This document shows, one piece after another, positions 36,701-51,900 of a stretch of 64,000 nucleotides of DNA. The stretch spans positions 10,168,001 through 10,232,000 of the forward strand of contig CP075492.1 in assembly GCA_021613535.1 (NCBI GenBank), in the 5' to 3' direction. Under the pieces are notes generated by a model, which was given only the letters and a program-made list of their open reading frames with translations, did not search any database and was not told where the DNA came from. How positions within the stretch are numbered: the stretch's first letter is position 1; every line of letters begins with the position of its first letter. The stretch comes from Adineta vaga. Lineage: Eukaryota > Animalia > Rotifera. The position numbers and the translations under genes were made by a program.

Positions 36701-38059
36701 TTAACTATAAAACTCTAGATCGCTATCATCTAAATTTTTGTTTGCTCTAGGAGTTGAACTTGTTGATTTGATATTTTTCTTTGTTACAGTTGATGTTGTT
36801 GATGTATCATCATCATCATCAAGTCCACCACCAGATGTTAATTTACTTAACCATGATGATGATGCTGTATTTGTTTTAACAAGAGATTGAATCGGTTGTT
36901 TTCTTTCGAATGATGTTTCATCTTCTGATATGGATTGTTGTGCTCCATGAAGTTTATCAACAATATGTTTTAGAAGACATTTTGCTTTTTCAAGAAGAGA
37001 TTGTCGATTATTTAATGATAAAATCGGTGCGAATTTATTTGCTAATATTTGTGAATTCATTATATGAAATTTTAATAATCGTGTAAAATGATCAATCAAT
37101 CTTGTCCAAAGAATACGATCGTTTTCAGGTAATATTTTCGTAATAATATCTTTATCTAGATCGATGACATTGAGTGAAAGAATATCTTCCGTTAATAAAC
37201 ATTGATGAACTGTCGTACGACGTATTGTCGATGGTAATTGATCAAGTATGACCATTGATGTGGTTGTTGGATCAAGATCTTTCAATGCTGATTGTTGACG
37301 ATTATTAGCAATATCCAATATAGTACGTTTTTGTGTAATTGTTGGTGGATCATGATGATAGAATTTCTTTTTATCAATTGTATCATGTAATTCATTTTCG
37401 ATATAATCAAGTAAGAAGAAAAGACCGAGACGACTTAATTCCATTCGAAGTGAACCAGGACGTTTCGAACGAGAAAATGCACTGGATGTTGAATCCGATA
37501 AAGATTGATCATCAGGTTGTTGTTGATTATTTGTTGTCGATGGCCTTGCATGATCTAGATGATGTTGAGACATTGAAGAAGGAGTTATGTCGATTGGTTG
37601 ATGTGTAGATGGTGTAGAATGAACATCATTTTGATGTGTTCGTAAACGATCAAAACTATAAATATCTTTATTAACAATTGAACTAATGGTACTTGATTCA
37701 GGTTTTTGCCAATTTGGATAATTTGATTCGAGATATTCTGTATAATCAGATTTTAATCGTATTAAATGTTCAGAATCTTTACGTAATTCATCTAGATGTT
37801 GTTCAGCTCGTTGAATATCATTCAATAATTGTAGATTACGTTGTTTAGCTCGTTCAGATTCTTGATTAAATTGACTAAAATACGAATGAATATCGTCGAC
37901 TTGTTGACGTTGTTTTAAACGTGAATCAATGGTAAATAATGAATTTAATTTTTGATCAAGTTGTATACGTTGCTCTTCACTTTTTAAAATTTCCGAATAT
38001 AAACGTGCACTTCGTTTATGATAATCAGCTATGCCTGGTGATAATGTTGATGATTTCAT
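36701..38059 (-). CDS. KIZ: Centrosomal protein kizuna-like, intronless
   Basis: N-terminal DYHKRSARLYSEILKSEEQRIQLDQKL...ESERAKQRNLQLL resembles the kizuna N-terminal coiled coil; acidic C-terminal end; X-box-like motif upstream. Confidence 0.75.
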   Translation of the reverse strand: MKSSTLSPGIADYHKRSARLYSEILKSEEQRIQLDQKLNSLFTIDSRLKQRQQVDDIHSYFSQFNQESERAKQRNLQLLNDIQRAEQHLDELRKDSEHLIRLKSDYTEYLESNYPNWQKPESSTISSIVNKDIYSFDRLRTHQNDVHSTPSTHQPIDITPSSMSQHHLDHARPSTTNNQQQPDDQSLSDSTSSAFSRSKRPGSLRMELSRLGLFFLLDYIENELHDTIDKKKFYHHDPPTITQKRTILDIANNRQQSALKDLDPTTTSMVILDQLPSTIRRTTVHQCLLTEDILSLNVIDLDKDIITKILPENDRILWTRLIDHFTRLLKFHIMNSQILANKFAPILSLNNRQSLLEKAKCLLKHIVDKLHGAQQSISEDETSFERKQPIQSLVKTNTASSSWLSKLTSGGGLDDDDDTSTTSTVTKKNIKSTSSTPRANKNLDDSDLEFYS

Positions 38060-38189
38060 TTTAGAATTAAAAAACACGACAAAAAGAATTGGTATATAAT
38101 GTTACAAGATAGAATGTAAAATAACTGCTCATGTCTGCTTACCTTTTTCTTCCATCTTTCTTTTTCTTTTTCTTTTTCTTTTCTGTAAG

Positions 38190-38770: not shown

Positions 38771-39000
38771 CTTAGAACTACGTATTACAAATATAAAAAA
38801 TATGGTAATGTATTTTCGTGCAAGCAAACATTCATAACTCTATAGTTACCATCTGTAATTTGCGAAGTAGATGTTTGACATCTTCAATCTAGAGAACAAA
38901 GTGTATTCAAATATAACTCAAAGACATCAAAATATTTACACACGAAATATGATATCGAATGCAAACTTGTTGAGTGAATATGCAGAATTATTCATATAAT

Positions 39001-39031
<31 letters not shown>

Positions 39032-39076
39032 GCTCGAATCAACGATCACAAGTCAGATTTCGAAATCGATATTTTG
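38771..39076 (+). repeat. Non-coding dispersed repeat, copy 1 (contains a (CTAA)n tract)
   Basis: Near-identical to 41904-42245 (direct) and to part of 47760-48032 (inverted). Confidence 0.9.
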
Positions 39077-41903: not shown

Positions 41904-42316
41904 CTTAAAACTATGTATTACAAATATGCTAAATATGGTAATGTATTTTTGTGCAAGCAAACATTCATAACTCTATAGTTACCATCTGTGATTTGCGAAG
42001 TAGGATAAATACGCCTCCAATCGACTTTTGACGAATATCTTGTTTGACATCTTCAATTTAGAGAACAAAGTGTATTCAAATACAACTAAAAAACAACAAA
42101 AATATTTACACACGAAATATGATATCGAATGCAAACTTGTTGAGTGAATATGCAGTATTATTCATATCATCTAACCAACTAACTAACTAACTAAAAATAT
42201 AACTCGAATCAATGATGACAAGTCAGATTTCAAAATCAATATTTTCGATGGAATATGAAGAAGTTAAAAGCAGTTGAAGGAGTGAGAGATGATTTGTACA
42301 TTCATAAATTCAGATC
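41904..42316 (+). repeat. Non-coding dispersed repeat, copy 2 (left arm of the inverted repeat)
   Basis: 42045-42316 is the reverse complement of about 47760-48032 with few mismatches. Confidence 0.9.
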
Positions 42317-42574
42317 GATGGAACTGGCGTCGATGAATGCGAAACGATGATATGGATGGAATAGCTTCATCTATCTTGAGTCTCTACAAATTCTTATCTT
42401 CATGATGATCTATCTTTGCATATAATACTTGTTAGATAGAATTGTGAAAACCTTAGATATTCGACTTGATTGATCATTTAACAATTGTATATTGCTGTTT
42501 AGATTTAAGTGTATATCTAATTCGTCGAACAAACAATTTTAACTGCGTATTCGAATCTTTCAACAATATTCATT

Positions 42575-44532
42575 ATGTTTAGGTAACGTACATTATGCAT
42601 TTTTATGTTTAATACCACTGTTTTTTTTGTTCAGTTGGACATGGTCAGTCAGTCTGACTTTATTCTGCTGGTGTGTTGTGATTCAAACAGAAGGCAAACA
42701 ATTGGTTTCAATTGATTCCATATCTACAAAACAAGATTCACTTGGAGAAAGTAAAAGCCTCGGTAAGTTGTTTCTCATAATCAAGTCTGAAAATTTGATA
42801 AGATGATGTAATTGAATCTACGTCCGAACATATGGTTTATAATTCTAATAGTGTTCTATGTGAACTGAAAATTATATATTTAGCTCCACATTGTATGGAT
42901 CATGTAAGAAATCAGGATGAAAGTGATGTTGATTGCGGTGGTGAAACATGTCCAAAATGTAAGAATGGAAAAGTTTGCAATGAAGATTGTGATTGTATGA
43001 CTAATACGTGTAAAGACGGCAAATGTGCAGGTAAGTTATTAACATCGATGAGTTCGACATATCACATGTTGTATCATTTTAGCATTTGAATCATGTGATG
43101 ATAACATTAAAAATCAAGATGAAACAGATGTTGACTGTGGTGGATCTCAATGTCCTGCATGTGAAGATTCGAAGACATGCAAGGAACATAAGGATTGTAA
43201 TAGTGGTCTTTGCAAAAAGAAGAGATGTGTTGGTGAGTATTTGAAAATTGAGGATGTGCAACTAGAAATGGAAGATTTGCTCGTTTAGTTGTGGAATCAT
43301 GCGATGATGGCATCAAAAATCAAGATGAAAGTGACGTTGATTGTGGTGGTATTAAATGTCCACGATGTGAACATTGGAAAAAATGCAAAGCTGATTGTGA
43401 TTGTATCGGTGATTCTTGCAAGAATAAAACATGTATAGGTAAGAAGCTTACTAAGATTCATACGAACAATATTATATCAATTCGTTTCTATAGGAGCGGA
43501 ATCATGTGTAGATGGTATTAAAAATCAAGATGAAACTGATATTGATTGTGGCGGTGATAAATGTCCCAAATGTGAAATTACGAAAGTTTGTGACGATGAC
43601 TGCGATTGTCACAATGGTGTGTGCAGAAATAATACATGTGTTCGTAAGTATGGACCTATTTCTTCTTGAATTGGGATTATACATAATTGAAAACAGGTAA
43701 ATAATCAGTACAACTCATTATAAATTTGTTCTCATTTAGCTAATTGTGTTCCTGAATGTCAAAATAATGGTGTTTGTACTATTCATAGAAACTGTAGTTG
43801 CCCAGTTGGTTTCACTGGTGCTAGCTGTGAAGTTCGTACGTACTTAAATTCGTTCTGTATTTCTGTTCTACATTTCATATTCTATCATTTTAAGAATCTG
43901 TTGGTTTATGTCATGATAATGAAACACTTGGTACAGAGCCAATTCTTTTAATCACATTCGGTAATGGACAACCTCAATACTCGAGAGCTAAACCTTCTGA
44001 GTTCAACTTTACTACAACATATAAACAACGATTTGAACCTGTAACTAATGATGGAATGTTTAGTTTTGTTAATGCTGTTCACAATGACTTCTACAATACA
44101 TGGCATACGAATGCCACGGATCATACAGAAGATGATGGTGGATACATGCTTTTAGTCAATGCTGATTATCGACCGGGTGAATTTTACAAAGGACAAGTGG
44201 ACAATCTATGCGTCGGTTTACGTTATGAATTCTCTGTATACTTAGCAAATGTTTGCACACCACCTGACCGAATTAAACCAAATGTTCGATTTGAAGTTCG
44301 AAGTCCAACAACTGGAAATCAATTACTTGCTCGATTACTTTCTGGTGAAATACCAGTTCAAAACAAATTGACATGGCATAAGTATGGTCTTTCATTCATT
44401 GCACCAAGTAGTTCAGTTGTTCTATTAATGATTTCTGATGCACGTGGAGGCATGGGCAATGATATTGTTATAGATGATATTGCATTACGTGTTTGTTCAC
44501 ATGAAGGTTCAGGTTTCTGTCCAGCAGAATAA
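42575..44532 (+). CDS. Secreted protein: signal peptide, 4 DCGG cysteine-rich repeats, EGF domain, C-terminal Bacteroidota-like lectin/beta-sandwich domain (8 exons)
   Basis: MFSWTWSVSLTLFCWCVVIQTEG; four C.D..KNQDE.D.DCGG..CP.C exons, all phase 1; EGF CQNNGVC...CSCPVGFTGASCE; DHT..GGYMLLVNA...PGEFY...LC.G..YEFS...GNDIVIDDI. Confidence 0.85.
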
Positions 44533-45107
44533 TGTCGTATTAATTCAAGAAACATTCGATCATTATAAATGACCATACTTTTTCTTTTCCATTGAGTATT
44601 CTCTGTTGAATTTCTTTTATCTCATAACTATAAATGGGTTTGCTTTCTCAAGAGGAAAACTTACGTTTCGCACCACCTCATCATTCCGAATTCCCAGAAA
44701 AAGAAAGAAAAAATTCCGGCATATTGTTCGAAATAGCAAAGATCTTCAGGGCGTTGGTAGAGATGAGGATCTGGACGATTGGACACTAACTAGTATATAA
44801 TGTTAACCTATGCCTACCCACATTCATTCTCACCTATCATTGGTCTGATCCACACCCACACCCACACCCTCAAGAAACGTAATTTATCCTTTTAAGACTT
44901 TTGAATTTATATCTGACATTTCATTTCATCTATCGTATGATACAGTTTTGATCGAGCCGTTGTACAAAAAAGTTACATCTGAATTCTTACGATGTCATGT
45001 AACTTTTATTTTTTATTGACGCATATGACTAATAAAATGTTGAGCAATTTGCTTAGCAAATGAATGGAACATATTTATATAATAATATTATCATTATTAA
45101 ATCACTT

Positions 45108-47537
45108 TCAAAAGGTATTGCGTAGTATGAGTATGCAAAAAGTTGAAAGAAGAGTAGAGAAAATAATGACTGATGTCTCATATGTAACTGTTGATATTGT
45201 CGAACTCTTAAGTGGATGATAGACGAAATCATGAATGATAATTTCAATTGGTTTGCTATTACTTGGAAAACGATCATTGTTATCCATATGAAAGATCCAT
45301 AAATTCATATGTATTGGTGCTGACATTTGAGGTACTGCTTTTGAAAAGCTAGTCGATGATTGCCATGATTGAATTATGTTACTATCGTCATTTCGAAATC
45401 CAGAGATAGACTTAAATATGACTGATTCCGACGACCAAATAAATCGTTGGGTTGTATAGATACTCGTTTGATTGTAAATGAGTGCAGTTCCGCTTTTTGG
45501 TTCGTTATCTTTTGTTGGCCAAACATTGTAGAATAGATTTGGTGTTGTTGATGAATTTGATCCCCATCGAGTGAACTCAATGTCGATCTCATTGGTTTTA
45601 TTTATACCCGTTATCAATAAACTAGACGTATACAAGCTCAAAACGGCTTTCGGATCTAAAACATTGAGAAATGCTTCGATTTGCCATTGAAAAGTGCCAA
45701 AATTAAAACGATTTGCTGTATACAATGCTGCACTTGTCCAAATATCAGATGTATTGATTATTCGAAGATGTAATAGACCTTTATCATCAATCCATACGTT
45801 ATCAGTCAAGTAATTGTTCAATCCTAGGTAGAAAACAACATTTAGATATTCAAATTTACTGACCTCATATTTAAAAAATTGTTGAATCGAAAAAAATGAG
45901 AAAGAGAGATACCTGGCGCATTGCTTAGATCGTTACGAAGACACCAAGTATAGCCTTTCCACACAATTGACTTTGATGGACAGGTGCCATTCAATGTTAC
46001 TAAAAATGGATTATATATTAGGATTAATAAAGATATTCATCAATATCGTTACCTGTTGTTGAGGTAGATGTCGATGATGTTGTAGTACTACTTGATGTAG
46101 TCGAAGTTGAAGATGTTGTCGTTGAGTTAGTACGTAAAGTTGTTGAGGTCATAGTGATATCTGTTGAAGTAACAGTCCAGGCTGATGTTGTTGTATTTAT
46201 GATTGACGAAATTGTAGTCGTATTGAAGGTAGTTTTAGTGGGATTTGTGGAAATGACAGATGTTATTTCTGTCGTTGTATCTGTATTTGATACGATCGTA
46301 GTCCAGTTGCCTTCGAAAGAGGCTATAAAAAAGTTACAGGTAGAAAATAAATCTTCACCATTACCATGTTCGAAGTTTTCTATTCAAAGATAGTTCTATA
46401 CACTGCAGTTCAATCTGTAAATCTTATAACAATATCAACTCAACACAAGTCTTGTTCTCAATGTAAATTACAAAATAGTTTTCTATTATTGTCTGATCGG
46501 AACTTCATTGAAGGATGATACTTACAAGTACATTGATTATTTTCACATAAACCACTAATACAATCACAGTCATCATCACACAACTTCAAATCTTCGCATT
46601 TGGCACATTGATCACCACCACAATCGATATCTGTTTCTTCTTGATTTTTCATACCATCCATACATGATTCTGCCACTAAATAACGAAATGACTTCGAATT
46701 TTAGTTATACAAATACTTTACTACTCACCAGCACAAGTCTTATTTTTACAAGTATCACTAATACAATCACAGTTATCTTTACATTTTTTCCAAAGGGCAC
46801 ATCGAGGACATTTGACTCCACCACAATCAATATCACTTTCATCTTGATTCTTGATATTATCTTCACATGATTCCACAACTAAACGAGTAAGTCTGCCGAT
46901 CTTCTGGATATACTCATAAGATTACTCACTGGCACATTTCTTTCTTTCACAAAGAACACTGTCGCAATCTCTATGTTCCTTGCATGCCTTGAGATCTGCA
47001 CATCCAGGACATGTTAAACCACCACAATCAACATCTGTTTCATCTTGATTTCTAATATTGTCGTCACATGATTCAAATACTAAAATGGCGCAATAGATTA
47101 TACGTGACAAAAACAAGATTCGTAGACTTACAGGCACATCTTTTCTTTCTACAGGCATTTGTCATGCAATCGCTGTCTTCATCGCAATTCTTTCCAATGT
47201 CACATTTTGGACATACCTCACCACCGCAATCAACATCACTTTCATCTTGATTTTTTGTATGATCGACACAGTGAGATACTAAAAAGATTCGTGTCGATTT
47301 TATGAAAGAACAATAAATAAATAGAAAATACAAACTTTTGATTTTCCGAGGCGAAACTTCTTTTGGAGATATTGAATCGGTAGGTACTTGCTGTTTACTC
47401 TCTGTGGAGTCACAACACACCAACAGAAGAATCCCAACCAGAATAACCACATCCAACTAGAGCATTCGCAAAATACTCAACTAGTTAGAGTTACTGATCG
47501 ATACATCAAACTCTTACCTGGATGTAGTGAGCATCAT
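45108..47537 (-). CDS. Secreted/anchored protein: signal peptide, 4 DCGG repeats, Ser/Thr mucin stalk, GH16 glycoside hydrolase domain, hydrophobic C-terminus (GPI or TM) (9 exons)
   Basis: Paralogous DCGG exons; WKGYTWCLR..NAPG..NVWIDDKGLLHLRI...NEIDIEFTRWG (GH16 ExDxE)...PIHMNLW; hydrophobic tail VIIFSTLLSTFCILIL. Confidence 0.85.
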
Positions 47538-47759
47538 TTGAGATCAGAATGAATGAATAATAATCGTATAGGGTTAGAAATATCTGTCAAAAAAAATTTA
47601 GATTTTTAGTCAAATCTAGAAAGAAATATCAGCTCTTGATATAGTAATTTGAACGTTTGAAGAGCTACGCGAAGAGGACGATAACTGTATTGAAGAAGAA
47701 CTTCGAAATTTAACCTATATTTATTATTTCGTTTATCATAAACCAACGGGAATTACACA

Positions 47760-48032
47760 GATCTGAATTTAACAAATGTACATATCATCTCTCACTCCTT
47801 CAACTGCTTTTAACTTCATCATATTACATCGAAAATATTGATTTTGAAATCTGACTTGTCATCATTGATTCGAGTTATATTTTTAGTTAGTTAGTTAGTT
47901 GGTTAGATGATATGAATAATACTGCATATTCACTCAACAAGTTTGCATTCGATATCACATTTCGTTTGTAAATATTTTGATGTCTTTGAGTTATATTTGA
48001 ATACACTTTGTTCTCTAGATTGACGATGTCAA
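47760..48032 (-). repeat. Non-coding dispersed repeat, copy 3 (right arm of the inverted repeat)
   Basis: Reverse complement of 42045-42316. Confidence 0.9.
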
Positions 48033-48407
48033 GTAAGATACCCATCCAAAATTGATGAGACGGATGTGCGTGGGAACGTTCTACAAAGATTGTTTTCATG
48101 AATATATGTCATAGTTTTTACCGCTATGATGTACATTTTAATAGCAAAATAATATTAGAACAATACGTAAGATCGAAGTTTATGTATGTTTAGCAATCAC
48201 CACAAGAAGTTGTATTACAATTATATACATAATTCATTATGCTTGAAAATGTGTTTGCTTATATCAATCAGATGAAGTGATCAATATTCATTAATATACA
48301 TATAACTGTAGGTTTTATTACGAAGTATCATAAAGAATGAAACAATAGTCGAAGAATTTTCGCAACCTATGTGTGAAATGAATCATTCTTTTAATGGCTA
48401 TAAATTT

Positions 48408-48967: not shown

Positions 48968-51900
48968 ATGGCTAAATTTATCTCACGTTTATTTCGAAGT
49001 AATTCTTCATCAAGAAATCCTTCTTTCAATTCTTCTCAAACATCACTAAATGATAGTCAAAATCGAAATCGATCAACCAGTAATATACGAACTACAACAT
49101 CATTAGAAAATCTTTCATCGTATCATGTTATTCCCAAAGAATTAGAAAAAAATAAATTACATAAAGCATCATGGGAAGGAAATGTCAATAAAGTGATTCG
49201 TCTAGCAAGACCAGGACAAATCAATATAAAAGATCAACAGAATCGTGTATGAACAATATTCTTTTTCTGCATTTTCATGTTCTACAAATTTTTATTTGTT
49301 TATAGACTCCATTGCATTTAGCTGTTGTCAAAGGACATCTACAAATTGTGAAACATCTTGTTCAGGAAGATGCAAAACTTGATGTTGTCGATAGTGATCA
49401 ACGAACACCGTTGATCAAAGCTGTTCTTAGTGGTAGTCAAAATCCTGCGTTAAACTATCAAATTTGTGAAGTGTTAATCAAAGGTGATAATGGTGCTAGT
49501 AAGTCGTTCGATTGATTCATGAGAGTGGCATTAAATATTTTATTTTCATAGCTATTAATCTTTGCGATAGACAAGGACGAAATGCTTTACATTATGCGAT
49601 TGATTATGGCAATGAACAACTTGTAAATCTTCTTCTTTCAAATGAAAACTGTGATCCAAATTTAAAAGATCATGAAGAAAGAACACCATTGCATTTAGCT
49701 ATCAAAAAAAATAGTATACCAATTGTTCGATCATTACTATCCGATGAACATGAACAACAAGCTGATCCCAATCTAGTTGATCGCAATGGACAAACTCCAT
49801 TACATGTTGCAGCCAGTGTTGGTTATACTGATATTGTTCGACTTCTATTAGTATCGGATCTTGAAGAACCATGTGATCCATCAATAGTTGATTCTCAACA
49901 AGTAACAGCGTATCAACTTGCGAAAGCAAACCATCAAGAAGTATGTGCGAAATTAATTGAAGAATATCAAGAAAAATGGTATAAAAAAGCACCACGAAGG
50001 CCAACAACAGCATCGCTTAATGAGCAAATATCTGCAAGAGGAGCAACGTCAATATCTATGACGCCAGCTGCGAATCTTCAACGTCCAAGTGATGATACAA
50101 GTGATGATTCGTCGTCAATCTCAGCAAATAAACCATTGAAATTGTCACCAAGACGTATAGTACAACGAACAAGTGATCAATGGTCGGATGACAATGGTCC
50201 GTCTGTAAGTGTGTCGAAACCAGAATCTCATGGCTTAACAAATTTGTTCAAAAGTAATCCATTACAAATGGAACGAATTAAAACAAATGAAAATTCAACA
50301 TTAACTAATCTAATGACGAATAATCCACTAAAAACTGATTTAAAGAAAGTAACATCATCAGGCAAACCTACATCACGTAAGTTATACGATATAAAGGAAT
50401 CGCTAGTCATCGATTCGTTTTCTCCACTTTTTATTCTCATTAGCTCAACAAAGACATCCATCATCCTCTTACTTCGGTATTGGACCGGTGATTGAACGTA
50501 CAGGCAGTGATAATACATCCACTAGTGTATCAATTGATAAATCTGTTATACCAGCAGCATCGCGAACTCAACAAAATAAACCTATCGGAACGAATGCAAA
50601 TACAACAGTTCTTCATCAGATAGTACCGAATACGAAATCTTGGTCGGATGATACAATAACAGCACCCCATCCGATAGCGAAACCATCAGCATTGAAGAAA
50701 CAAATCTCTCCTGATGACACATGGAATTCATCAATATCTGATGATGATCGAAATGTAATTAAACCTAAATCGGCCATATCGACGTTACAGAAAACTTTAC
50801 CATTTACACCTTCGACAAATTATCAAATACATTCGGATAGTGCCGACGATGATGATGATGAAGATTCAGTTGAAACTGAAATTCGAAAACTTGATGCACA
50901 AAAAACATCGACTGCTTCAACAACGCAAGCACTAGTTAATACACATATTGGAAGTGGTTATAAAGTAATCGGACTAACTGAAGCTCATTCTGTACTAAGT
51001 GATGATTCTTCTTGGACACCATCACCTGCATTAGGAAATAAAGAGCCTACAACCAAAGGAGTTCGAAATCTCGTACAGAAAGCGGATGATTCAACATGGG
51101 ATGATTCTCGACCATTGAGTATTGAACCAAAAGAAAAGTCAACTGTTAAAAGTATCTCAAGTCTAGTAACGAATCAACCAAATCTACCCGAAGCAAAATC
51201 AACAGGAGTTGAAAATTTAACGAAGATGATGACATCGATCATACATCCAATCAAGTTACCGTAAGATCACAAAATATTTCTGACAATTTCTTCATTTCAT
51301 TTTATTTTGTTCTTCAAGATCAACATCACCGAAAATGATTGGTAAATTAATCGTGTCTCCTATGGTTGAACGTACTGATTCTGTTTTATCTGAAAATACA
51401 TTACATGAAGTGGATAATGATGATGATGATTATGATTATGAACGTAAGAATTCGTTTCCGTTTTTATTCAGCTAATTCTTTTTTATCTCAATTCTTAGGA
51501 AGTTGGAACAAGAAGAAGAAGAGTGAAGAATGGTCTGTTACAGCACCAATTGGACAAGATTTTAAAACATTACAACAACTAGCACGACCAACACTACCTG
51601 GTGATAAAACAAGTTTACATGATTCGATATCATCAATAAAATCATCGACTAATGATGTAAGAAAAAGTTATTTTAGTTGAAACAAAATTGTGCTTTGTGT
51701 TCTTCATACCATAGATCAATGAAATGAAAGAGAATATCAAACGACTTGAACGTCAACAAGAAGATGCTCATGAATTAAAACGACAATTAAAAGAAATGGA
51801 AAATAAAAAGAATGATTTCGAAAAATTATATCGAGAAAACAATCAAATGTTACGTGATGTTGAAGTTAAATTAGAATTAGAAAAAACGGAAAAACAACGT

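Follow-up and report, generated by a model that had tools for sequence, protein, structure and literature searches.

The window analysed here, a stretch of 64,000 nt from the genome of the bdelloid rotifer Adineta vaga (G000:C3:10168001-10232000), contains between positions 42575 and 47537 two convergent (tail-to-tail) predicted genes that share an N-terminal array of cysteine-rich repeats, called here DCGG repeats after their core, and end in different bacterial-type domains. We refer to them as PLUS and MINUS after their strands. The gene models were built from the sequence, with GT-AG borders at all introns. PLUS (42575-44532, + strand) has eight exons and encodes 488 amino acids, and MINUS (47537-45108, - strand), which is I4U23_014000, has nine exons and encodes 604. 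The downstream junctions of the PLUS model agree with those of its Adineta ricciae orthologue (P0214), and the downstream junctions of the MINUS model are those of the annotated A. vaga protein P0219 (I4U23_014000). Single exons were used as queries in the database searches, the joined spliced models serving only for local translation, hydropathy and the ratio of nonsynonymous to synonymous substitution rates (dN/dS), and genome-wide searches were made in the A. vaga genome (100.8 Mb in six contigs).

Both genes have the same layout at the 5' end: a tiny first exon, a signal-peptide exon with a hydrophobic core, and then four exons of 147, 150, 150 and 150 nt, each of which encodes one 49-residue module with eight cysteines and the DCGG core. 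Most introns in either gene are 51-61 nt long. PLUS exon 1 (42575-42582) consists of the ATG plus five nucleotides and is followed by a phase-2 intron, a layout also found in MINUS and in the A. ricciae orthologue. Exon 2 (42635-42762) carries the predicted signal-peptide core, recognised by hydropathy, and an acidic Ser-rich linker, and it aligns with the leaders of paralogues. The DCGG exons 1-4, all phase 1-1, lie at 42884-43030, 43083-43232, 43289-43438 and 43494-43643 (span 42884-43643). In MINUS the start codons are in exon 1 (47518-47537, conserved with A. ricciae, again with a phase-2 intron next), the signal-peptide core is in exon 2 (47332-47456), and the DCGG exons, also phase 1-1 and rank-for-rank paralogues of those in PLUS, are at 47278-47132, 47079-46930, 46878-46729 and 46675-46526 (span 46526-47278). 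The initial annotation of this DNA had described two convergent genes with a common signal peptide and four matched DCGG exons that diverge afterwards, and the gene models bear this out. Its statement that all introns are in phase 1 holds for intron 2 onward; intron 1 is in phase 2 in both genes.

Beyond the repeats the genes are different. PLUS continues with an EGF exon (43740-43835, phase 1-1) and a last exon of 638 nt (43895-44532, stop codon at 44530-44532) that encodes a 211-residue domain with the motifs DHT, GYMLLVNA and GNDIVIDDI, after which no hydrophobic segment was found by hydropathy. MINUS continues with a Ser/Thr-rich, mucin-like stalk exon (46053-46322; 90 residues, 66% Ser plus Thr) with junctions identical to those in P0219, followed by an exon with the first strands of a GH16-like domain (45913-45999), which aligns with the start of bacterial homologues. 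The last MINUS exon (45108-45823) encodes the core of this domain with the motif NEIDIEF and, beyond it, a Ser/Thr-rich spacer and a C-terminal tail of hydrophobic residues.

The DCGG exons form inverted arms with 72-81% nucleotide identity. At the protein level, PLUS and MINUS repeats of the same rank are 64-77% identical, against 44-63% off the diagonal. Exons of the two genes are 67-81% identical and introns 1 and 3-5 52-64%, whereas introns 2 (31%) and 6 (36%) show no real similarity. Since intron 6, the phase-1 intron behind repeat 4, lacks similarity, this is where the homology stops. The closest relative of the PLUS tail is a paralogue located at C3:3.79 Mb (75%) and that of the MINUS tail is the other DCGG+GH16 gene, at C3:4.85 Mb. 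The repeats of PLUS are 55-66% identical to those of the C3:3.79 Mb gene and the repeats of MINUS 48-62% to those of the C3:4.85 Mb gene, in both cases below the 64-77% match between PLUS and MINUS themselves. Repeats and tails therefore differ in their closest relatives and in their history, and the change from one to the other falls within an intron. This incongruence, the symmetric phase-1 exons and the break of homology inside an intron support the exon shuffling that had been proposed for the pair. Opposite-strand DCGG neighbours, head to head and with a GH16 tail or one of the PLUS type, were also found at G000:C3:4846818-4853075 and G000:C1:11893730-11898493, and neighbouring genes in inverted orientation seem to be usual in this gene family.

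The EGF exon of PLUS scored over the Pfam cut-offs of several EGF families, including PF00008 (24.1 bits, cut-off 21.5) and PF23106 (25.5 bits, cut-off 24.3), with matches to EGF, EGF_Teneurin and EGF_2. The 211-residue domain that follows matched no family in Pfam and no structure in a single-sequence search of the PDB, and in NCBIfam only a weak match to NTTRR-F1 appeared (24 bits, cut-off 70). Its neighbours in a protein language model were DUF642 and CBM_4_9 (0.90-0.93). An AlphaFold2 model, computed from an alignment of paralogues, gave a beta-sandwich with a predicted local distance difference test (pLDDT) value of 79. In Foldseek searches of the PDB this model matched jelly rolls of the CBM4/16/22 type of carbohydrate-binding modules (E 8e-7 to 1e-5), with template modelling (TM) scores of merely 0.4-0.54. 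In the ESM Atlas, a TM score of 0.81 over about 198 residues was obtained with N-terminal domains of Bacteroidota proteins ending in CHU_C or Por_Secre_tail.

The exhaustive profile search with this domain returned 2974 clusters. Long matches carry CHU_C, Ig_7 and PKD domains, one of them from a Prevotellaceae genome. Identity to the rotifer domain is 52% for P0068 (E 7e-69) and 50% for P0030, and the gene of P0068 adjoins a PorP/SprF gene, both being on a 122-kb contig that is clearly bacterial. Like these N-terminal domains of Bacteroidota type-B type IX secretion system (T9SS) cargo proteins, the rotifer domain has the motifs DHT, GYM..VN, PNV.FE.R and GND..DDI, and the likeness amounts to 50-52% identity over about 190 residues and the TM score of 0.81 between predicted structures. 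The resemblance to modules of Bacteroidota surface proteins, pointed out in the initial annotation, is thus confirmed by identity, by the PorP/SprF neighbour and by predicted fold. The bacterial cargo proteins have Ig-like spacers and CHU_C; the rotifer proteins have neither and carry instead a eukaryotic signal peptide, DCGG repeats and EGF. No CHU_C was found in the PLUS gene in the Pfam scan, and the gene ends directly after the 211-residue domain. PLUS appears, from this arrangement, to have inherited only the cargo domain and not its secretion-system context.

The named eukaryotic matches of the PLUS domain are all bdelloids (Adineta and Rotaria). A tree was computed from 44 rotifer domains and 25 bacterial ones from CHU_C-bearing proteins, leaving out 101 unlabelled matches. 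All rotifer rows fall into a single clade within the bacterial ones, supported by 100 in the Shimodaira-Hasegawa-like approximate likelihood-ratio test. At least 13 intact copies of the domain are present in A. vaga. Four of them stand in tandem on one strand at G000:C5:3446204-3450846 (L006-L009) and are 54-60% identical to the copy in the window, and two or three copies in tandem were also seen in database proteins (P0026-P0031). The PLUS product has no anchor and is most likely a soluble, lectin-like protein whose predicted glycan binding follows from the fold class.

The GH16-like domain of MINUS is interrupted by one intron and keeps NEIDIEF intact. The single sequence scored 17.2 bits against the Pfam GH16 family PF00722 (cut-off 22, E 0.0037), and only four of 19 relatives matched PF00722 at E<=0.1. 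GH16 membership therefore rests on the family profile, the subfamily being divergent and its Pfam score under the threshold. The profile of the 19 members found five lichenase structures in the PDB (E 4e-8 to 5e-5) and placed NEIDIEF on the catalytic DEIDIEF of 1MAC and 1BYH. Matches of the lone GH16 exon to glucose-6-phosphate dehydrogenase structures were discarded as spurious, the family profile finding lichenases instead. Homologues of the tail include bacterial proteins named GH16 by NCBI, from Longimicrobiales and Brevundimonas, and the named eukaryotic matches are again only bdelloids. In the GH16 tree the rotifer-like rows, some of which are unnamed metagenome proteins labelled by similarity and hydrophobic tails, form one group (94/90), whose sister is a pair of proteins from a bacterial glycan-utilisation neighbourhood. 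For both tails, then, the foreign origin suggested earlier was examined by domain searches and trees, with named eukaryotic matches restricted to bdelloids and monophyletic rotifer copies as the outcome.

The similarity with lichenase-type bacterial GH16 enzymes (1MAC, 1BYH and 1GBG) covers about 150 homologous residues (E 4e-8) and the Glu-Ile-Asp-Ile-Glu strand with no inserted residue. In contrast to them MINUS is very divergent, split by an intron and fused to a signal peptide, four DCGG repeats, a mucin-like stalk and a hydrophobic tail, and the catalytic residues of the rotifer subfamily are not conserved. The motif reads NEVNIEF in the A. ricciae orthologue, NKIDIEF in the other A. vaga DCGG+GH16 gene, and NQINIDF and NQITIDF in two relatives. 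In the A. ricciae orthologue (L017:1883-2764, - strand), where the Asp of the catalytic motif is replaced by Asn, an open frame spans the site of the A. vaga intron inside the GH16 domain. The GH16 domain with an intact EIDIE motif described in the initial annotation is present, as NEIDIEF and with profile matches to Bacillus lichenases at 4e-8. As for the word glucanase used for it, the motif is complete in the window copy and is changed in A. ricciae (NEVNIEF) and in several close relatives; judging by these substitutions, the glucanase may really be a lectin.

At its C-terminus MINUS has a stretch of 17 hydrophobic residues followed by RNTF (Kyte-Doolittle hydropathy above 1.6 from residues 583-587 onward), preceded by the Ser/Thr-rich spacer. 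This tail is kept in the paralogues of MINUS and in its orthologue and is absent from the bacterial homologues. By sequence, the product is most likely a surface-held protein, with a candidate glycosylphosphatidylinositol (GPI) or tail anchor, that acts as a beta-glycan hydrolase or as a GH16-derived glycan receptor. The beta-1,3-glucan recognition proteins of arthropods, also called Gram-negative binding proteins (GNBPs), are extracellular proteins with a GH16 fold that have often lost the catalytic residues and kept glycan binding. They offer a functional analogy only, the rotifer subfamily showing a likewise patchy loss of the triad; no specific sequence relationship to them was found, the rotifer family groups with bacterial proteins, and the window copy keeps the full motif.

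The DCGG module has the cysteine spacing C-x13-C-x4-C-x2-C-x5-C-x5-C-x4-C-x4-C with an E..D.DCGG core and occurs in tandem arrays. In 49 repeats from rotifers, Myxococcota and algae, C4, E13, C18, G19, C26, C32, C38, C43 and C48 are invariant. Two contiguous repeats of a relative matched 391 proteins, and their taxa were read from the 120 matches listed. Among these there are many Myxococcota (Myxococcales, Polyangiales, Minicystis and Bradymonadaceae), a few other bacteria, algae of the Scenedesmaceae, and bdelloids, which are the only animals named; one of the matches listed is a Myxococcales protein with E 2.6e-59. Rotifer and Myxococcota repeats are 44-45% identical over two repeats, with identical cysteine spacing and core. 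In Myxococcota the arrays are followed by discoidin, CBM_3, fibrinogen_C, Laminin_G_3 or FGE-sulfatase heads (we call head the domain that follows an array), and secreted proteins or lipoproteins of this group (such as P0211, P0221 and P0224) share with the rotifers the same eight-cysteine repeat, the N-terminal array and the C-terminal glycan-binding head. They differ in their intronless arrays and in their heads, while each rotifer repeat is a separate phase-1 exon. The DCGG exons scanned against Pfam and NCBIfam matched no family, with only sub-threshold LEAP-2 and scorpion calcine noise. They did not match TIGR02232, the Myxococcus cysteine-rich repeat, provided that the NCBIfam library contains it; TIGR02232 is probably the named family that the initial annotation referred to. 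The resemblance to myxobacterial cysteine-rich repeats is thus real as far as homologues in Myxococcota are concerned (44-45%), and the repeat of these homologues has no name. The best match of a DCGG profile in the PDB was LEAP-2 (E 0.029), with no related solved structure, and a mediocre AlphaFold2 model of one repeat (pLDDT 70.6) gave no significant Foldseek match, knottin-like toxins appearing at E>1 over the C-terminal half.

The genome-wide survey of DCGG exons and their C-terminal partners yielded at least 89 exons of this type in A. vaga, in clusters, and at least eight kinds of head after the arrays: the PLUS domain, GH16, an unnamed 224-residue module, Laminin_G_3, Jacalin, NHL, Hint and FG-GAP. 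At loci other than the window the array is linked to its head by same-strand adjacency. A polyadenylated environmental transcript contig (L042), from a relative 65% identical, contains DCGG repeats, stalk, EGF and the PLUS domain in a single open reading frame. The recurrent head of about 224 residues starts with N-G-x-F-E-x-G...G-W-T-x-G-G-G, belongs to no Pfam family and comes after the DCGG array in four or more genes of A. vaga (L018:3998-4669, L020:1318-1989, L022:6582-7319 on the - strand and L023:6911-7609 on the - strand). It was also found at the C-terminus of A. ricciae P0205 and at the N-terminus of P0039, where it precedes EGF and the PLUS domain.

A. ricciae has this convergent pair too, with the ankyrin gene next to it as in A. 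vaga. Orthologous DCGG repeats of both species are 83-93% (PLUS) and 67-85% (MINUS) identical, above the paralogous pairs, so the duplication is older than the split of the species and the arrays have not evolved in concert. Concerted evolution could have been suspected from the synonymous divergence (dS), which is 0.86 between the arrays and 1.3-1.5 to A. ricciae, and was rejected since each array is clearly closer to its A. ricciae orthologue in protein; dS is near saturation. The dN/dS against A. ricciae is 0.06 for the PLUS domain and 0.16 for GH16, and about 0.19 between the PLUS and MINUS DCGG arrays. The pair is under purifying selection (dN/dS 0.06-0.2).

Upstream of each gene there is also a shared element. 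Position 42099-42302 (+ strand), before PLUS, is 98% identical over 204 nt to its inverted twin at 47775-47978 (- strand), before MINUS, and the twins lie about 240-480 nt upstream of the respective start codons. With a further copy at 38872-39075, the copies of the element (38872-39075, 42020-42350 and 47729-48056, two direct and one inverted) are 89-98% identical and the outer two bracket the region. The element is not dispersed: the genome contains only the three local copies and a 50-nt core near C3:3785315. Its 21-nt core has four sites genome-wide, the fourth upstream of the closest PLUS-type paralogue. The identity and position of the twins would fit either a cis element common to both genes or a tract of recent gene conversion.

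The 5' end of MINUS is peculiar. Aligned with PLUS, the A. ricciae orthologue and a paralogue, its exon 2 is one base short just past the signal-peptide core. The donor homologous to that of the other genes (GTTTGT at 47335) leads into a wrong frame with an early stop in DCGG exon 1, and the frame into this exon is kept only with the donor GTATTT at 47331, which sits 4 nt downstream and restores it exactly. The public annotation P0219 sidesteps the deletion with a start at an internal Met downstream, and it models no signal peptide. The 5' reading frame of MINUS is doubtful.

Taken together, these data are best explained, with a probability that we put at about 0.7, by an old pair of paralogues with a common secreted front end whose bacterial-type tails were joined by intronic recombination, and which would now encode a soluble binder and an anchored GH16 protein. 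The front end would consist of the upstream element, the signal peptide and the four DCGG modules, each of 49 residues, rich in disulfides and encoded by one symmetric phase-1 exon. An inverted copy of this block would have passed between two genes that differ in their back ends, and since the break falls in the intron behind repeat 4, the event would be exon shuffling through intronic recombination. PLUS would thus combine an animal-type EGF with a beta-sandwich derived from the N-terminal domain of a Bacteroidota T9SS surface protein, and MINUS a putatively O-glycosylated Ser/Thr stalk with a divergent, bacterial-derived GH16 domain (Glu-x-Asp-x-Glu) and a C-terminal hydrophobic signal. DCGG in A. 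vaga would be a promiscuous exon cassette, a module of Myxococcota type that in those bacteria also stands ahead of lectin-like heads. The evolutionary part of this explanation, the scaffold included, is well supported; secretion, anchoring, glycan binding or hydrolysis, and co-regulation are predicted from fold classes and motifs. Several points weigh against it. The family of the PLUS domain has no characterised member, and its predicted glycan binding follows from a fold class matched at TM scores of 0.4-0.54 to solved carbohydrate-binding modules. The lone MINUS sequence is under the Pfam GH16 threshold, and the catalytic triad is changed in the A. ricciae orthologue and in relatives, hydrolysis not being conserved in the subfamily. 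The deletion between the MINUS signal peptide and repeats demands a non-homologous donor, and the annotators gave P0219 no signal peptide. Finally, the direction of DCGG transfer, from bacteria to rotifer, is putative, the repeat is also present in Scenedesmaceae algae, and the putative link of DCGG to other heads comes from same-strand adjacency.

The most serious alternative, to which we give a little less than an even chance, is that the pair is an accident of an inverted partial duplication, i.e. independently regulated neighbours with unrelated roles and no cooperating glycan system. In line with this, DCGG arrays elsewhere adjoin many unrelated heads, and the two tails have different closest paralogues, located elsewhere on chromosome 3. 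PLUS has also evolved more slowly than MINUS, both in the repeats (83-93% vs 67-85%) and in dN/dS (0.06 vs 0.16). Nevertheless, the convergent arrangement has been retained in A. ricciae, the upstream element is common to both genes and equally distant from them, with 98% identity over 204 nt compared to 52-64% in the introns, and both heads come from glycan-related fold classes. A different doubt concerns MINUS alone, which might no longer be a working secreted hydrolase, either because its 5' end has been freshly disabled or because the subfamily has turned into non-catalytic glycan-binding proteins. The one-base deletion in exon 2 against three homologous leaders, the stop in DCGG exon 1 reached from the homologous donor and the internal Met of the annotation agree with the former, and the replacement of catalytic residues in the A. 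ricciae orthologue and in three of seven other close relatives with the latter; GH16-derived beta-glucan recognition proteins of arthropods did become non-catalytic binders. We consider this unlikely, as the downstream coding sequence of about 1.8 kb is free of stops, no repeat has lost any of its eight cysteines, the NEIDIEF motif is complete, dN/dS against A. ricciae is 0.16, and a GT donor 4 nt downstream puts the frame right; the single-base indel could also be an assembly error.

The scaffold itself could be native, DCGG being an old eukaryotic module that Myxococcota obtained from eukaryotes or reached by convergence, so that only the tails would be foreign. The presence of the repeat in green algae (Tetradesmus and Scenedesmus) and its division into classical phase-1 exons in rotifers are in line with this, 49 residues are too short for a resolved tree, and another family of cysteine-rich repeats has been argued to be eukaryotic and merely to accompany transferred domains (PMC7379824; bioRxiv 10.64898/2026.06.07.730663). 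This option is quite improbable in our view, given that the named matches among those listed are mostly Myxococcota, of several orders, that the eight-cysteine spacing is the same and the identity 44-45% over two repeats, that an N-terminal array with a C-terminal lectin-like head occurs in both groups, and that bdelloids are the only named animals among the 120. As for bacterial contamination or an assembly palindrome, the tail domains do look bacterial and early A. vaga assemblies held artefactual palindromes. We count this explanation as refuted: spliceosomal introns occur throughout, including in the GH16 domain, the base composition is that of the host (G+C about 33% over the locus, as in the remainder of the window), the inverted arms are merely 72-81% identical, the pair is flanked by ordinary animal genes midway along a 20-Mb chromosome, and the arrangement recurs in A. 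ricciae.

The flanking genes are one for an ankyrin-repeat protein (48968-51264, + strand) and one for a coiled-coil-like protein of 458 residues (36701-38077, - strand). The spacer between both stop codons, 575 nt in A. vaga and only about 230 nt in A. ricciae, contains in A. vaga three and a bit copies of CCCACA at 44849-44872 (+ strand), a repeat of which none is expected by chance in the window. CCCACA is the complement of TGTGGG, the telomeric hexamer of A. vaga (PMC7943196). The tract may have been left by the healing of a break or by a telomere-associated retroelement.

Horizontally acquired glucanases of bdelloids are induced by a fungal pathogen (PMC11258130). These are canonical lichenase-like enzymes with other gene identifiers and could not be mapped onto MINUS. 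Cysteine-rich repeats N-terminal to prokaryote-derived domains have been described, with rotifers the richest among animals (PMC7379824; bioRxiv 10.64898/2026.06.07.730663), as have animal-foreign gene fusions in arthropods (PMC13389597). The PLUS and MINUS genes are like these published chimeras in being secreted eukaryotic proteins, by prediction here, with N-terminal cysteine-rich repeats before bacterial-type enzymatic or binding domains. The published repeat (rusticalin, Neocallimastix) was ruled out as a form of DCGG, having six cysteines and ending in CC. We came across no account of the DCGG cassette, of an animal protein with the T9SS-type domain or of this inverted pair in the literature searched.

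Bdelloids are the textbook example of animals with horizontal gene transfer on a large scale. The route from foreign coding pieces to working animal genes is poorly documented, and the locus presents several steps of it together: bacterial-type domains with the composition of the host, a spliceosomal intron gained within GH16, a reusable symmetric-phase cassette, an intronic breakpoint, a native EGF mixed in and constraint across species. A widespread and uncharacterised Bacteroidota T9SS domain (about 3000 clusters) is now available in an experimentally tractable eukaryotic context, and the GH16 subfamily is perhaps shifting from enzyme to receptor. More speculatively, a Myxococcota-type repeat cassette with its promoter and signal peptide might be a docking platform for acquired glycan domains that arrive by intronic recombination, giving a varied repertoire, specific to the lineage, of receptors and enzymes against microbial walls, either secreted or on the surface, of which this pair would be a preserved plug-in snapshot, a co-regulated unit of binder plus hydrolase; we regard this as a tentative and unlikely idea. 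If the products do bind or cut the wall glycans of fungi or bacteria, the acquired antifungal response reported for bdelloids would gain a layer of recognition.

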